The translations under genes and the position numbers were made by a program. The notes under the pieces were generated by a model, which saw only the letters and a list, made by a program, of their open reading frames with translations, searched no databases and was not told the DNA's origin. From Epithemia pelagica (lineage: Eukaryota > Protista > Bacillariophyta): 64,000 bases of DNA. The DNA is taken from positions 620,001 through 684,000 of the forward strand of contig OX337239.1 in assembly GCA_946965045.2 (NCBI GenBank), in the 5' to 3' direction. Below, in pieces: positions 7,021 through 17,214 of the stretch. How positions within the stretch are numbered: position 1 is the first letter of the stretch; each line of letters opens with the position of its first letter.

Positions 7021-8957
7021 ATGCAGTCGCGAACGACGGCCCGCAAACAAGCGGCTCCAGCCTTGCGTCGCAACAAGAAAAAGAGTGGAATGCGAATAAC
7101 ACCGCAATTGCAAATGATTGCCTTGGTGGTGGGTGGCTTTATGTTCGTTGGTCTGTTGGGATTGCTCTATGAGTTTTCGCAAACCACCACCACCACCAAC
7201 GACTCGTCGTCGGGCAACGGAGACAAGGAAGTCAACGAAAAACATGGGGACAAGGACTATTTGACTCCGGTTGTTCCCGTCCTTCCCATTTTTTCGCCCG
7301 TCCCCGGTGGCCCCGAGGCGGCCAAAGTCTTGAGGGAGGATACCATTCATCATCACCAGGCCACCATGGGTGGGGTCATTAGTATTTTGCAAAACTTTTT
7401 GAACCAATTGCATCAACACAATCGGGCCTTGGCGGCCCAAAAGCACGTGACGGAAAAGACGGTCATTAACGACTTTGTCCAATTGGTCCAGACGGAATTG
7501 CAACCCTTTGAAGATGCCTATCGAGACGAAACCATTTTCCCCGTTCGGGACGACGACAGCATCTTTTTGTCCCTGGCGGCCTATCGGGAACATTTGTTGG
7601 CCGATACACTGCGCTATGCCTTTTCGCATGCCAAACATCCCGAAAAACTCTACGTCGGTGCCGTTGTTCAAAATTGTTTTGGCAAAGTGGGAGACGATGG
7701 CGTCACGATTGACACGTCCGGGTTGCCCTGTCGCACCGGTCACGTCGTGGTGGGCAAGGACCAGAATGGCCACGATACGACCAAAGTGTCGGATGCGCCG
7801 GTGGATCCCAATGGCATTGCCGATTTTTGTGCCCTGCCCGACTATCAACAGTATTGCGCCAATGGACAAGTTCGAGCCTTGTATGTGCACGAATCGGAAA
7901 GTCAAGGACCGGCCATGGCCCGATACTATGCCTCCAAATTGTGGGGTGGCGAAACCTACTTTGTCCAATGCGACTCGCACTTGCAATTTGCCGAGCACTG
8001 GGATGCCAAGTATATTCAAGAATTGCAAGCGACACGAAATTATCCCAAATCCGTCCTGAGTTCCTACCCACCGGGGTTCCAAGAAGGAACTTCGGATGGG
8101 ACGGTCCATGAATCCATGGGAGCTCGCTTGTGTAGTTGTTCCACCAACGCTTTGGATCCCAATCCCATTTTGCGCATCAATGTGGGCCGTGGCTATCGAG
8201 GCGACGAACCTCGTCCCACCCAAATTCCCTTTATTGCCGCCGGCTTTTTCTTTGCCCATTCCACCTTTTTGAAGGACGTACCCTTTGATCCGCTCTTACC
8301 CTGGTGCTTTATGGGAGAAGAAATTGCCCTCTCCATGCGGGCCTGGACGCATGGATGGGATATCTATGCACCCCGCCGCAATCTCATTGCACATCAATAT
8401 CGACCCGGACGGTACGTAGAAACAAACACACAAGAGAGAGAGACTGGAATGCACGCCAGTCTGTGTGTTGGGGGGAGGTTGCGGCCTTTCATTCCTGATG
8501 TGCAACGGCCTCCTTTCTCCTGGATCCATGAGTTTCGTCCATGTTTCGCACTTGCTTACAACTGCCTGTTTCGTCTCTCACACAAGCGCTTTCCTTTTCT
8601 TTTTTGGTGTTGACACACGTGACTGTTGATCGAATCGTTCATCTCTCCCTTAGAATGGGCCTTCCCAAGTTTTGGGAGACGGTGAATCGCTTGTTTCGGG
8701 GTGCCACGGGCTTGAATCAAATTCAACATATCATGATTAATCGCATCAAAAATATGGTGGGCTATCCCGATGCCACCCGAGAAATCATTGCTCGCGATGG
8801 CAATGAAATTATTTTAACCGACATTGAACACTATGGGTTGGGTACGGAACGAAGCTGGGAAGACTATATGGAATTTGCCAATTTGCACATTAATGAACAA
8901 CACAATGTCATTGACTGTTCCGCAATTTCATGGTGTAATCATGGTACCAAAGATTAA
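7021..8957 (+). CDS. GT60 family glycosyltransferase (Skp1-hydroxyproline/polypeptide GlcNAc-transferase-like), type II membrane; exons 7021-8411, 8654-8957
   Basis: Motifs SIFLSLAAYRE, QGPAMARYYASKLWGGETYFVQCDSH, FIAAGFFF, FDPLLPWCFMGEEIALSMRAWTHGWDIYAP. Intron 8412-8653 (GTACGT...TTAG) restores HQYRPGRMGLPKFW. N-terminal TM helix present. Confidence 0.9.
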
Positions 8958-10680: not shown

Positions 10681-11824
10681 CTATTCTTGATTGCATTCCA
10701 ACAAATGGGACTTTTCTGACAATCGCTTGAAAAGAGCCGAGTTCTTGTCGATCAATGACAGAATTTCACAGGAATTTGGGCTAAATCCTGAAATAGTAAG
10801 AATACCATTGGACAGAGCAACCATGCTGTGAATGGATCGTGACACATTTGTTTGGGGAGGAAGTACCCAGACCTTGTCGTGGTTCGTATCCAAAATCTCA
10901 ACTGACCGTGGAAAGGGACCTCCCACGTTAATGAGATCATTGTGCCCACCGGAAACGATCAGACATGATCCAACTCTGACCACAACATGATCAAAACGGG
11001 GCTCGGAAAGTTTCAACTGTTTGTGTTTGGTCCATGACAAACCTGACCAATACACAGATGCGTTCATTTGGCCAGAATCGCTGAGATCTAGATACTCGAC
11101 CGAGATATATGTATAATTCATATATATTATGTCCCCAGCCACCAACGACATGGACGCGCTGACCAATGAGTTCCATTCCAAACTGTTCACGAGCAACCTT
11201 CAAAGGTGGGCCCGAAAAAACTACACGGTTGATGAGTGGTTGTATCCAAAATGTCAACCGAGGACAAGGTAAAATTGACGGAACGTCGTCCACCAACGAC
11301 AAGAATGTACCTTTTGTGAACCGCAACAGCGGAACAACTGGCCCTCGGAGCCGATAGACGGCATTTCAATGTCTTCCACAGTTCGTCTTGTTTCTCATGA
11401 TTGTCCCTCAAAGTAGTACTATTTCTCGTACAGGAAGAAATCAAGTCCACAAGACCAATCCGTTCAATCGTGTCGAAACACTCATGGTTATTGGTTCCTC
11501 CAATCGCTTACACATGGCTGTTACAGACTACGGCAGATAGACTGTACCTTCCTTGATTCAACGGTGGTCCTTCGAGCCAGTGCCTGCCTTGTCCATCCTC
11601 ACCTTTCAACAGAAGCACTGAATTGAGTTTACCGTGCCTACAACGACTACCACCATTTCCTCCTTGGGATTGTTGGGAGGATGCACCACCACCGAGGCAT
11701 GGTCATCCGGAAATCCACCCTCAACTCGATGCCATTCTTCTTCACTCGATATCCATTCGGGTGGTCTGCCTGGGCTTTCCCCCAACACAAGTCCAGAAAA
11801 ACGAGCTTGCTCCAAACAGTCCAT
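10681..11824 (-). pseudogene. Kelch-repeat beta-propeller protein, frameshifted
   Basis: Kelch blades are split over several frames: WKTLKCRLSAPRASCSAVAVHKRYILVVGG..SVDILDT; GPPLKVAREQFGMELIGQRVHVVGG; LSEPRFDHVVVRVGSCLIVSGG..SVEILDT. Paralogous to 41791-42702. Confidence 0.8.
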
Positions 11825-12173
11825 TGTAGTTTTTTATTGTTGTTCTCGGCCTCCTCCTATGTATACAATCTATAATCCCAGAAGAGACAAGAGCCCATCG
11901 TCCACCAAACATCAAACCAAAAGAATCTGGCGTAACACACGAAAACGCCAATCTTCACGAAAAATTGTACTTGTGGGATGATGGCACGGATCTTTACGCG
12001 CGCGACCCACAGTTTGCGTGATACTGTGGATAGTACCAGCCATTCATTTCGGATTTGCAGGTAAGTCTGAAATCGCCGTGCTGACAACAACGAGGCACCT
12101 TTTGGATCTCATTCTTTGTGCGCACCGGCTATTTGCTATCGAAGGAAAACAAAGCTGCAAGAAAATACAAAAC

Positions 12174-14227
12174 ATGGCATTTCCTCCAAAATCGTCTCCA
12201 TCCACCAAACAAGAAGATCCTTCAGTTGTTCAGTATTACGATGTGGAGGAAAGTCCCGCTGTTCCTCCAAAATCATCTCAGTCCATGAAACAAGAAGATC
12301 CTCCTGTTGTTGAGTATTACGACGTGGAGGAAAATCCGGACCTTATCTCCCCAAAGAAGAATGCCCCTCCCACTCTCGCATTGTGTGAAGGTAAGTCTGA
12401 AATCGTCCAATGACAACAGGAGGAATGATACCACCGTTCCACCGCCTGGATCTCATACTTGGTGTCTTTGTCTCTTCCACATTTACCACTTTGTGCTGTC
12501 GGGTGTTTCGCCGTACAGAAGACGAACAAAGCAGTGCAAAACTGCAACAAGAACCACACAAAATGGCTCCTCCTCTTCCATCGTCTTTGGCCGATAAGCG
12601 AGAAGCTCCGCCTGATCATTACTATCACAATGCCGAGAAAAATCCTGACCTAATTTCCCCCCAAGAGAGGAATGTTCGTCCACGAGTCAAGGCGAATACG
12701 GCAATAAGCCCTCACATTTGTTTGGTCCAACGCCGATTCTTTACTCGAACGGAAACCGGAAACCGCAAGAATCAACCCTGGGAACTCTTGTGTCATCGCC
12801 AAAGCCCAGAGTTAGTACAAAACGGCTTTTACGACCTGCCCTTCAGTCGAGGTGGATCTCTTCGGATTTGGACCAACTTTGTGTCGACCAGTCGACTGGG
12901 TTTGCTCAATCAAGAAATGCGGCAACGAGTCCAGTATCGGCAATACAGGATTCAAAGCGAAAACGAACCGCGAATTCATGCCCTCTATCACGAACAATCG
13001 ACACCTCCTCCCTCTGCCTCACCCGTGGGCGCCGATGCCCTGAACAATCGGCATCATGTCGTGCCAGGGTACCGCTACGCTCAAGTTACCATGAAATCGC
13101 GGCCTCTCTCCGATTTGCCCCACATTGCCTCCTTTTGCAATACCATCAAGCCCATCTGTGGTGTGGGAGAAGTAAACGACGCCAGTGCCTGGGGCATTGG
13201 CGTCAATCTAATATATTACCGCGATGGCAAGGACCGCATGGGCTTGCACGCGGACAATGATCAAGGCGAACAAAAGGTGGTGACCGTCTTGGTAGATGGA
13301 CCCCCACAACCCCGCCAAGTCTTGGTCCAAACCAAACGAAAGGACGTGGACAATGACAATTTGGAAGAAGAATTTCGCTTGTTTTTGCGTCCCGGCGATG
13401 CCTACTGCATGGACGGCGTCATGCAAGACTTTTATTTGCACGGCGTTCCCCGAGACGGTGGTCAAGTGGGAGGCGGCTACGAACGCTTGGCCATTGTCCT
13501 CCGGGCGGGTATATATTGCGAATATACTAAGGATTCGGGCCGTCCCGTCATCAATTTGACCCCACCAACTCCCAAACCCCTTGTCTTTGGTTCCATTGCA
13601 GAACTCTGTTTGGGAGGCCGTTATACTCGAGGCCAATTGGTTGACACGGGTGGCCATAATGGACGCCAACGAGGAGTTTGTGGCAATCAAGAAGAGGGAT
13701 GTTTCGCCCTCATTTCCTCTGGCAAGCAAGATAATCGATTCGAAGACTTTTGTCCCGATTCTCACTATATGTTGTATGCCGTACGCAGAGAAAAGGGCGG
13801 CCAGGCTGCCATTACCTCGGCCCTGAAGAATGAATCCATTCGAGTCTTTGAAAAACTCTTTACGGGCCTCCGATTCATTTATGAGTACAATGGACTATAT
13901 GATATTGTGGCTGTGGATCAGGATGACGACAAGGTACTTGTCGTCTTGAAACCATTCAAGACGCGCTGGGTCCAGTACTCATCGGCCACTCGAGACCCCG
14001 AACGAATAGACATCACAGACCGGGCACAAAAGAATCAGCGGATTATCAAGCTTAAAAACATGTTTTCCACCTTTGTCAATATGAAAGGAAAACCTCGGAG
14101 CTATTCCCTCATTCGGTCCAACTGCCTCCCCGCGGCACATTCTATATTCTATCTTGAGGAGGAGGAGGAGGAGGAGGAGGAGGAGGATGAACCGGAGTAC
14201 ACTACAACACACACATCGGAAGAATAA
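12174..14227 (+). CDS. AlkB-type 2OG-Fe(II) dioxygenase fused to a C-terminal SRA/YDG-like domain; exons 12174-12390, 12519-14227
   Basis: AlkB motifs: NLIYYRDGKDRMGLHAD (HxD), FYLHGVP (distal His), RLAIVLR (RxxxxxR). SRA-like: VFGSIAELCLGGRYTRGQLVDTGGH..RQRGVCGNQEEGCFALISSG...SIRVF...YEYNGLYDIV. In-frame intron 12391-12518. N-terminal PPKSS..KQEDP.VV.YYDVEE repeats and a poly-E tail. Confidence 0.78.
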
Positions 14228-15061: not shown

Positions 15062-17178
15062 TCATGGAGAAAGCGGAAACAGGCTGTTGCTCCTTTTTGC
15101 TGGTTCATGCTCCCTCTTTAGGTCTTTTCCCGATGGGAACAAGTCCTTTCGTTGGGTCGGAGACATCAATAAACAAGTACGTTCGGTTGCAACGGGAGGT
15201 GCGCATTCTGATGGATCCGTAGTGTTGTTTTTGTTCCTCTGGTTGCCACACTGTCGTTCTGGTCGTGCCACGGAGGAATGATACATGGTACTGGGCTTTT
15301 CTTGATTGGTAGTTTCTCCCATTGCGATCATTTCTTGTTCCGCCTCGTTTGTATGATTATCCGGTGGCTGGAGAGCATGAGTCACGTACAAGTGTCCCAC
15401 CAATGTGAGTAAGGATAAGATGGGTGCATACAAAGCCCATGGTGATAAAACGCGATGTACGCCTCCTCCCAACCACGACGACGACACGGCGGCGGAGGCT
15501 TCTTGCAGGGGAGATGAGGACGACGGTGAACCGACCAGAACCCGTTGGGCAATGAAGTTCGGTGCCACAAATCCGGCAATACTCGCATCCATGGACAAGA
15601 GAGCTTGCATCATTCCGGGATAATGTCGCAAACGAGGACTGCGATTCACAGCTTGTGTATACAAACATCGACTCGTGGTGGTGGTCAAGGGAAATCCCAG
15701 ATTGGCCACCACGAGTGGGATGACAAACAAGGCCCAGGAACGAACCACTGAGAGGTTGTGGTTGTTGTTGTAAGTCGTTGGCGAAGGGATTGCTCAACAG
15801 GGGTAGAGTGCTCCATGTCCGACTATGGACAAGACCAATCCATAACTTCACAGTGTGGACTCGGAACAGCCTCGTCGCGACAATGTCCAGGTGGCCACAA
15901 TCGCCACAAAGATCGTTCCAGCTTGAATTCCAAACAAGCCCGAAGTCCCCACGGGCCCTACACCCAAAACGTCATGGGCCGCCGCGGCGCCAGAGCCGTT
16001 TCCAAGAGCTGAAAGTTGGCATTCAGTTGAAAAATGCTCAAAACAGGAACCATGAGGGACAAGAACAGCAGGTATGTGCCAAAGCCTCTTTCTTTGGTTT
16101 CCTCATCCTTGGTGGGAATCGTTTCTTGGTCGGATACATTGTCAAATTGATTGCACCAGCTCGTCTTTTCCACGTCGTAATTCTCGTCAGCAATCTCCTC
16201 GTTGACTGTTGCTTTGGCGGCATCCTTGGACATGGACAATCGACTAATAGGACCTTTGGGTTCGACCAAAAAGACATCAATGACAAGGACTGCCAGTAGA
16301 TTGGCCATGGCCATGAACAAACCCACGACATTGAGAGGTGTCACGCGAACCCATACGGTCCATGACGACGACGACGACGACGACGAAAAGCCAAATGGCA
16401 GGGTCCCCTGCAAATGATGGAATACCAAGGAGAGCGCTGGTGCTGTTGTCATACCAATCACACGAACCATGGACAAGACGGCTGTGGCTTGTGTCAAAAG
16501 TCGAGTCTTACCAGAAGAATCATCGCCACCACACACATGCTGCGCCACATAGGTAAATCCCAAGGTGCTATTGGCGGCACCCACTCCCCCCAAGAAACGA
16601 CCCGCAAACAAGAGTACCATGGCATGGTTGGGTTGGGACGTGAGGCTGGCGCCAAAGTACAAGAGTCCACCCGCTGCAACCACATACAAGGAAACCAGGT
16701 AGGGACGGACAAAGGTGTGGCACTGATCGCACCAATATCCCAGGACGGGTTTGAACAGGAAACTACTCAACGAAAAGGCTGCCACGATCCAGCCATAGGA
16801 ACGGTAGGAACCACCATTGTCCAAGACATAAAAGACGAGTGAAGGAGCCGTTACCATGTAACAAAGGGCATCGACCAAGCCCACAAAGGCCAGAGGTGCC
16901 AGCAAGCGGTAAGGGATGGTGGGAAGAGGATCGTCCGGCCCACTTTCTGTGAAGCTTGTGCGAGACCAAGAACTTGTGGCAGAAGTGACGCTCTTTCGAA
17001 GTTTGGGCGGAATGTCTTTAAACCTTGCGGGAGATGATGTGCTGTTAGGAGAACTCTTCTCGTCGTTGACACTAGTAATGGTGGGAGTCTTGCACGCCAT
17101 GATATAAACTTGTCCACAAAGACGCGCGTCGTCTTGGTGCTGTAGTTTGGATAATGAATGTTCGATATTGCTCTTTGG

Positions 17179-17209
<31 letters not shown>

Positions 17210-17214
17210 GGCAT
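15062..17214 (-). pseudogene. Major facilitator superfamily transporter, disrupted by one frameshift and two in-frame TGA codons
   Basis: MFS motifs (LGYWCDQCH; LLFAGRFLGGVGAAN) lie in ORF 15958-17214. After a frameshift near 15985 the frame continues AAHDVLGVGPVGTSGLFG...STL*SYGLVLS...YPC*AIP into ORF 15062-15748 (MMQALLSMDASIAGFVAPNF). Confidence 0.8.

Follow-up and report, generated by a model that had tools for sequence, protein, structure and literature searches.

A predicted AlkB-SRA fusion protein of the diatom Epithemia pelagica with an ALKBH2/3-type dioxygenase domain and a remodelled SRA domain

Fusions of an AlkB-family dioxygenase with an SRA (SAD/YDG) domain have been known as a computational prediction since 2016. 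Iyer, Zhang and Aravind (Bioessays 2016, PMC4738411) describe fusions of AlkBH3 to SAD/SRA as well as divergent SAD(SRA) domains joined to AlkB in several fungi, and they propose that AlkBH3-SAD/SRA proteins conceivably demethylate N6-methyladenine (m6A, or 6mA) in DNA and that the divergent fungal SRA could recognise m6A and not 5-methylcytosine (5mC). An ALKBH12 group common to fungi and diatoms lies inside the ALKBH2/3 supergroup (Mielecki et al. 2012, PMC3265494). Here, we analyse a gene of this architecture on a stretch of 64,000 nucleotides from the diatom Epithemia pelagica (assembly GCA_946965045.2, contig OX337239.1, positions 620,001 to 684,000 of the forward strand), which is called the window below and in which positions are counted from its first letter. 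The protein is a further member of the architecture predicted in 2016, and a preliminary description of the locus, made from the letters alone, was right in stating that AlkB-SRA fusions had been noted bioinformatically in some fungi. New is only that the hallmark motifs of the SRA domain have been remodelled, in a lineage-specific manner, in each of the two gene copies of this genome. On balance, we lean slightly towards the view that the gene product is an AlkB-family enzyme of ALKBH2/3 type which acts on DNA in the nucleus, as an oxidative demethylase or a repair dioxygenase, and whose catalytic domain a conserved linker keeps beside a base-flipping SRA DNA-binding domain.

The catalytic part of the protein matches the Pfam family 2OG-FeII_Oxy_2 (PF13532; 2OG, 2-oxoglutarate) over profile positions 2-194 of 194, with 59.5 bits against a cut-off of 31.2 bits (E 6.6e-16). 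The complete AlkB motif set HxD...H...RxxxxxR named by the preliminary description is found as H280, D282, H344, R359 and R365. The three iron ligands H280, D282 and H344 are kept in 96%, 96% and 100% of 53 relatives, respectively, and H344, R359 and R365 are invariant in 55 of 55 family sequences. All AlkB-domain positions that are conserved in at least 80% of the 53 relatives are kept, with the exception of two conservative swaps, L145F near the N-terminal edge of the domain and F364L. When a profile made from the catalytic domains of the family is compared with solved structures, the sole match at E<=0.01 is human ALKBH3 (E 2.8e-7), whose base-stacking Tyr (in YTYS) falls opposite the family's invariant GYRYA in the alignment; a search of the PDB with the whole protein as a single sequence returned nothing at E<=1, so that profiles had to be used. 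A structural model of the two domains together (predicted local distance difference test, pLDDT, 88.5) finds ALKBH3 first in Foldseek, with a template modelling (TM) score of 0.77-0.80, followed by ALKBH2. Ranks 1-25 are all ALKBH3 or ALKBH2 (TM by target 0.72-0.80), and E. coli AlkB, FTO, ALKBH7 and ALKBH6 rank lower. The AlkB domain looks catalytically competent on these comparisons, and its placement relative to the SRA domain is predicted with confidence (predicted TM score, pTM, 0.85).

The SRA-like region directly after the AlkB domain is likewise present as first described, with its YNG motif in YEYNGLY (aa 491-497) and the divergent pocket segment SGKQDNRFED at aa 437-446. In the Pfam search the match of this region to SAD_SRA (PF02182) covers aa 394-508 and has an E-value of 3.3e-5, and its 24.1 bits stay under the cut-off of 30.7 bits. 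The other relatives tested all reach 33-57 bits on the same family, the paralog 27.4 bits. Eight homologues obtained in the first search have AlkB and SAD_SRA matches in Pfam, and six of the eight score 45-57 bits on SAD_SRA with a canonical YRYDGLY. A profile built from 55 SRA domains of the family matches the SRA of TagI at E 2e-17 and, at about 1e-10, those of UHRF1/UHRF2 and SUVH5. For the window SRA domain, AlphaFold2 gives a model with a pLDDT of 91.7; in a Foldseek search of the PDB the top 50 matches of this model are all SRA domains (TM by query 0.68-0.77), and VIA-align gives Z-scores of 16.4 for TagI, 16.1 for SUVH5, 15.8 for KRYPTONITE, 15.2 for SUVH6 and 13.8 for NP95/UHRF1, with the range of SRA domains extending to 13.5 and unrelated folds at Z of about 6. 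As the Pfam scores of the homologues, the matches of the family profile, the model of the domain itself and the structural search agree, the C-terminal domain is predicted to be a genuine SRA fold despite its sub-threshold Pfam score. The preliminary description had made its reading depend on an SRA/PUA-like fold in this place, and this is the fold that was found.

When 1.84 billion representative proteins were searched exhaustively with a profile, 2693 matches reached E<=0.001 and 331 clusters reached E<=1e-30, and dozens of the best matches cover both domains in one stretch. Judged by these matches, the family is large, conserved and ochrophyte (mostly diatom), with the same two-domain core. 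Named members come from the diatoms Cylindrotheca closterium, Seminavis robusta, Epithemia clementina and Fragilaria crotonensis and, outside the diatoms, from the pelagophyte Aureococcus anophagefferens. The nearest relatives of the window protein point to a diatom-like ochrophyte as its source, in line with the preliminary description. The rarity implied by the preliminary description does not hold, as members number in the hundreds across diatoms and at least one pelagophyte and the genome itself has a second copy. Public databases already name members “YDG domain-containing protein” or “AlkB”, the labels in Seminavis robusta being “expressed unknown protein” (P0063) and “YDG domain-containing protein”. 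P0142 from Aureococcus anophagefferens and P0186 from Fragilaria crotonensis are labelled “SET domain-containing protein” at NCBI. By Pfam at E<=0.001 neither has a SET domain, P0142 consisting of AlkB and SRA and P0186 of SRA only, and these labels were apparently carried over in annotation from SRA-SET proteins of SUVH type. A word-index homologue search with the 55-sequence profile found nothing beyond the first search, a structure search of the ESM Atlas found no two-domain twin, and a feature search of the atlas led no further than to Ascomycota AlkB clusters of about 590 aa, at sub-threshold values (0.82-0.83). Some long members carry additional domains, namely Tudor-knot, MSL3-chromo or chromo domains in P0066, P0080 and P0196 and PHD or ePHD in P0092 and P0109. 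Such combinations of several readers tie a dioxygenase for nucleic acids to histone marks, and the presence of the histone-reader domains argues for a chromatin, and hence a DNA, context of the family.

The hallmark motifs of the SRA domain are altered in the window copy. The VRVxR and YDG motifs, both intact in TagI, UHRF1 and SUVH5, read IRVFE for VRVFR and YEYNG for YRYDG. Other changes are shared by the family: hidden Markov model (HMM) alignments to UHRF1 and TagI show that the canonical pocket segment GG-Y-xDD has become SG-x-(R/S/D), and the position of UHRF1 Y466 is held by Q440 in the window copy and by R, S or D in relatives, so that it is non-aromatic family-wide. In UHRF1 the pocket for 5mC consists of two stacking Tyr, Y466 and Y478, and the Asp D469; the equivalent of Y478 is conserved as Y456. 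The NKR finger loop is missing in the family, with about 6 residues, as judged from alignment gaps, in place of a loop of more than 30 residues in UHRF1. A 2-aa pocket insertion, common to the window copy and its paralog, displaces the near-invariant Asp of the family and makes the register of this Asp (UHRF1 D469) ambiguous. Kept is the thumb-like H416...Q420-R-G, in which Q420 aligns with the Gln of SUVH5 HRPSQSG; this thumb Gln of SUVH5 occupies the gap vacated by the flipped base.

The origin of these changes can be followed through the second copy of the gene. This paralog (G000:C13:276349-277461, locus L002, ORF 1039-2937; ORF, open reading frame) is found about 356 kb upstream of the window gene on its contig, is identical to the public protein P0002 and has 49-54% identity to the window protein (BLASTP, six-frame match). 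In the genome (G000; 60.5 Mb, 23 contigs) the two AlkB-SRA paralogs are the only Pfam matches to SAD_SRA in a search that went exon by exon and that short pieces may therefore escape, and no SRA protein of UHRF1 or SUVH type was seen in the 60.5-Mb assembly. A maximum-likelihood tree of 55 family members places the window copy and the paralog as sisters with support of 100/97. The sister clade of the two, formed by the Epithemia proteins P0016 and P0021, keeps VFRR, YRYDGLY and the near-invariant pocket Asp, and the branches of the two paralogs are about twice as long as those of this sister pair. Both paralogs have VFEK (R481E, S482K) together with the pocket-loop insertion, and YRYDG was changed separately in each, to YEYNG in the window copy and to KYCG (KYCGLY) in the paralog, giving R492E/K and D494N/C. 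Measured against the rest of the family, no other of the 55 members has as low a ratio of SRA to AlkB identity as these two (0.79 vs 0.93 +/- 0.05).

One way of explaining such changes would be that the SRA in this lineage reads no modified base at all and is a structural or non-specific nucleic-acid-binding appendage, the protein being a plain alkylation-repair AlkB. The charge reversals R481E and R492E at positions conserved to 96-100%, the replacement in YDG by Asn or Cys, the pocket insertion, the low identity ratio and the long branches all fit this, as does the sub-threshold Pfam score of the window copy; the paralog, at 27.4 bits, is under the cut-off in the protein scan too and comes to 32.8 bits only when neighbouring in-frame matches are added. 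However, the SRA domains of the two paralogs are 45% identical and their AlkB domains 55%, as opposed to 18-29% for the N- and C-terminal tails (18% for the C-terminal tail), and VFEK is the same in both copies. By these two observations, the SRA of both paralogs is clearly still under constraint, under purifying selection and not decaying. The high confidence with which the fold is predicted and the H...QRG retained in the window copy also speak against an appendage, which we regard as an unlikely explanation. In our reading, the SRA of both paralogs is instead a module that has been remodelled and still functions. The reader specificity of the window copy has probably shifted from, or weakened against, that of the relatives with a canonical YDG motif. 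There is also a small chance that the remodelled domain reads another modified base, such as 6mA, 4-methylcytosine (4mC), 3-methylcytosine (3mC) or a hypermodified pyrimidine, in which case the pair would, in this lineage only, read and erase a mark on DNA that is not 5mC.

The preliminary description went further and proposed a reader-eraser acting on 5mC or another modified base. Its general part, a dioxygenase fused to an SRA fold, has held up, and its application to 5mC has been weakened. Spelled out for 5mC, the SRA would read 5mC and the AlkB domain would oxidise it to 5-hydroxymethylcytosine (5hmC), 5-formylcytosine or 5-carboxylcytosine, so that the protein would substitute for TET in the active demethylation of diatoms. 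In favour of this, ALKBH2, ALKBH3 and AlkB oxidise 5mC in vitro (PMC6582317). Canonical SRA domains, including the closest structures TagI, SUVH5 and UHRF1, do read 5mC or 5hmC. C5-DNA methyltransferases are present in the genome and no Pfam match to Tet_JBP was found there, although the control of that search remained silent, which makes it a weak test; in the window protein, Tet_JBP (PF12851) has no match at E<=1. The natural substrates of the ALKBH2/3 clade, however, are N-methyl lesions, and oxidation of 5mC is only a weak side activity seen in vitro. The AlkB domain of the window protein is of this repair type, the family is devoid of the Tyr equivalent to Y466 and of the NKR finger, and the window copy has in addition lost R481, R492 and D494 and gained the pocket insertion. 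Furthermore, a single base cannot sit in both pockets simultaneously: AlkB and SRA both bind extrahelical bases and hence cannot hold the same nucleotide at once. Taken together, a 5mC reader-eraser appears improbable, marginally the more so of the two base-specific proposals considered here.

The other proposal, which follows Iyer, Zhang and Aravind, is an N6-methyladenine demethylase with an m6A-reading variant of the SRA domain, acting on DNA or RNA. The non-canonical composition of the pocket is compatible with a different base, and the known m6A erasers sit in other AlkB clades, namely those of ALKBH1, ALKBH4/NMAD-1, ALKBH5 and FTO, which counts against it. In PMC4738411, demethylation of m6A in DNA is put forward for AlkBH3-SAD/SRA proteins and reading of m6A for the divergent fungal fusions. 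The histone-reader fusions, while pointing to chromatin, do not identify the base. An m6A demethylase is accordingly doubtful as well.

At least six loci in the genome match C5-DNA methyltransferases, and ten loci in all match PF13532. The latter include three stand-alone AlkB homologues, which are ALKBH2-like (L006, G000:C17:1785385-1786011, E 4e-16), ALKBH3/2-like (L010, G000:C3:1863455-1864021, E 4.5e-9) and ALKBH1-like (L005, G000:C5:980197-980880, E 8.5e-27). The fusion was considered as the only ALKBH2/3-type enzyme of the genome, and this was rejected as stand-alone ALKBH2-like and ALKBH3/2-like genes are present. A targeted role of the AlkB-SRA fusion is more likely than one in bulk repair. 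A possible mechanism for a DNA-directed demethylase or repair dioxygenase would be that the enzyme is anchored to chromatin DNA by its SRA domain, which engages a flipped, probably modified, base, and that an N-methyl group on another base, either nearby or on the opposite strand, is then oxidised by the AlkB domain. The likeliest substrates would be those of ALKBH2/3 type, 3mC and 1-methyladenine (1mA), for example 3mC that arises as a by-product of C5-DNA methyltransferases in methylated DNA. According to a review (PMC9246332), such methyltransferases give rise to 3mC and their evolution is coupled to that of ALKB2. Roughly divided, a little under half of the weight that we give to a DNA-directed demethylase falls on 3mC/1mA, and much smaller, equal parts fall on oxidation of 5mC and on demethylation of 6mA.

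Several points weigh against this preferred reading. The SRA pocket of the whole family has neither the aromatic residue equivalent to Y466 nor the NKR finger, and the loss of two conserved Arg and of the YDG Asp could have weakened DNA binding in the window copy. Because separate ALKBH2-like and ALKBH3/2-like genes exist, bulk repair of 3mC and 1mA does not require the fusion. As far as the sequence shows, the substrate may be DNA or RNA and 3mC, 1mA, 6mA or 5mC, and the literature searched yielded no experimental (biochemical or expression) study of any AlkB-SRA protein.

The gene itself is best described by a single main ORF (Table 1), which was used in all searches; a joined exon model was translated solely as a check of phase. 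The public protein P0001 (603 aa), whose gene call puts the start at 12410, is 100% identical to this ORF across the searched aa 140-560 and differs from it over the full length by three substitutions and two short indels. The preliminary description had begun the gene at 12174, which is an ATG in a frame different from that of the main ORF, so that joining the two requires the putative intron at 12391-12518. This model is plausible because the 5' end of the gene consists of a tandem duplication of about 330 bp with a repeated donor and because a peptide repeat of about 27 aa has three in-frame copies, of which the putative exon 1 contains two, as PPKSS...YYDVEE(N/S)P, and the main ORF one (12570-12645). 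The corresponding 76-nt coding repeat begins at 12181, 12262 and 12570. A splice-donor-like GGTAAGTCTGAAATCG is present at 12056 and again at 12386, the duplicated donor reading TG(C/A)AGGTAAGTCTGAAATCG at both, the context of the ATG occurs twice, at 12174 and 12563, and the putative intron is part of the duplicated unit. With such a duplication (window 12056-12700), the gene may have alternative starts, or its 5' exon-intron unit may be present twice. The only sequencing runs found were three of unrecorded type, all from one study; their contigs are unspliced genomic sequence without joints. They differ from the window, either by heterozygosity or by strain, in T>C at 12348 and in A>G at 13550, of which the second produces the I381V change also seen in P0001. 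Contigs break at 14148-14197, at a poly-Glu run (nt 14156-14185) whose length varies between haplotypes or assemblies (10 vs 7 Glu, P0001 having 3 fewer). A scan of the protein with NCBIfam gave no match.

Table 1. Features of the AlkB-SRA gene and its predicted protein (window coordinates; nt, nucleotides; aa, amino acids)
Feature	Position	Strand	Basis and remarks
Putative first coding exon	12174..12390	+	Frame open from ATG 12174; GTAAGT adjoins at 12391
Putative phase-1 intron	12391..12518	+	GTAAGT...CCGTACAG, GT..AG; phase-compatible when the joined exons are translated
Main ORF	12410..14227	+	605 aa + stop; single uninterrupted frame; exon 2 would begin at 12519 if spliced as proposed
AlkB-type 2OG/Fe(II) dioxygenase domain, ALKBH3/ALKBH2-like	12860..13504 (aa 151-365)	+	Pfam PF13532
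HADND motif	13247..13261	+	Fe(II) ligands H280, D282; acidic D284 at HxDx(D/E); aligns with HSDDE of ALKBH3
H344 and R359xxxxxR365	13433..13504	+	Third Fe ligand in YLHGVP, nt 13433-13450; 2OG-binding motif, nt 13484-13504
Inter-domain linker with KDSGRP motif	13505..13582	+	D375 and G377 invariant or nearly so; conserved DSGxP
SRA (SAD/YDG) fold domain, derived version	13583..13969 (aa 392-520)	+	Profile and fold-model matches
Predicted base-pocket segment SSGKQDNRFEDFCPDSHYMLYA	13715..13780	+	HMM alignments to UHRF1 and TagI; column composition
Altered hallmark motifs	13841..13900	+	IRVFEK (family VFRS, R 100%); YEYNGLY (family YRYDGLY, R 96%, D 96%)
C-terminal tail	13970..14227	+	Low-confidence model; pLDDT <50 beyond core residue 380

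The uncertain start and the recent tandem duplication at the 5' end, together with the lack of transcript support in runs that are all DNA, could be taken as signs of a non-functional gene, either a decaying duplicate or an artefact of annotation. Against this stand the uninterrupted ORF of 605 aa, the intact catalytic residues of the AlkB domain, the recovery of the same ORF in a second assembly or haplotype with conservative differences only and the label of the Seminavis member P0063, which its source annotates as expressed. A pseudogene was rejected as unlikely, with the ORF intact, all catalytic residues present and the SRA constrained, and a gene without function is by far the least probable of the explanations discussed. 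The neighbouring ORFs encode a GlcNAc-type (N-acetylglucosamine) glycosyltransferase at 7021-8613 on the plus strand (PF11397, E 8e-66), a weak Kelch-repeat match at 10681-11450 on the minus strand and an MFS transporter at 15958-17214 on the minus strand (PF07690). None of the three has an evident functional link with the AlkB-SRA gene.

How diatoms and algae related to them remove or repair methyl marks on DNA is poorly understood, and a dioxygenase fused to a base-flipping reader is a concrete, testable candidate from a family that is large, conserved and wholly uncharacterised experimentally. When compared with known systems, the catalytic half of the protein is closest to human ALKBH3 and ALKBH2 (PDB 8jnr, 8jnk, 2iuw, 3btx), with which it shares the double-stranded beta-helix, HxD...H, RxxxxxR, the acid of HxDx(D/E) and the aligned base-stacking Tyr. 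It differs from them by an identity of only 14-18%, by large inserts in the domain and by the C-terminal SRA that follows a DSGxP linker. The 5mC oxidases TET and JBP likewise act on bases in nucleic acids as dioxygenases dependent on Fe(II) and 2OG and offer a conceptual parallel in the oxidative removal of methyl marks, but they form a different family to which the window protein does not belong.

The closest relative of the SRA half, both by profile (E 2e-17) and by structure (Z 16.4, root-mean-square deviation 2.5 over 125 residues), is that of TagI, a bacterial SRA-HNH modification-dependent endonuclease (PDB 6ghs). Both are compact and do without the long finger loop of UHRF1, and the structural neighbours of the window SRA in the ESM Atlas are bacterial SRA or SRA-HNH clusters. 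In contrast to the window protein, TagI has a nuclease as its partner and keeps GGY..DD, VRVIRG and YRYDGLY where the former has SGKQDN, IRVFEK and YEYNGLY. The SRA domains of UHRF1/UHRF2 and of the plant proteins SUVH4/5/6, which are readers of 5mC or 5hmC, resemble it in fold (Z 13.8-16.1), in the thumb-like H...Q/R-G and in the second pocket Tyr (Y456 vs Y478). Unlike UHRF1 and SUVH, the window SRA has no NKR finger, its equivalent of Y466 is non-aromatic, and the Asp of YDG and the Arg of VRVxR are replaced. The partner domains differ as well, being RING, PHD and TTD or SET in UHRF1 and SUVH and AlkB in the window protein.

The AlkBH3-SAD/SRA proteins and the fungal AlkB-SAD(SRA) fusions of PMC4738411, known, like the window protein, computationally only, come nearest as a whole, as they combine the same two-domain architecture with the same AlkB clade and a non-canonical SRA. 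The text of that paper names no diatom example, and the motif losses of the window copy are specific to its lineage. Two copies with an intact catalytic domain but altered SRA hallmarks, set against the canonical proteins of Epithemia and Cylindrotheca, amount to a natural experiment on what the SRA domain contributes to this type of enzyme.

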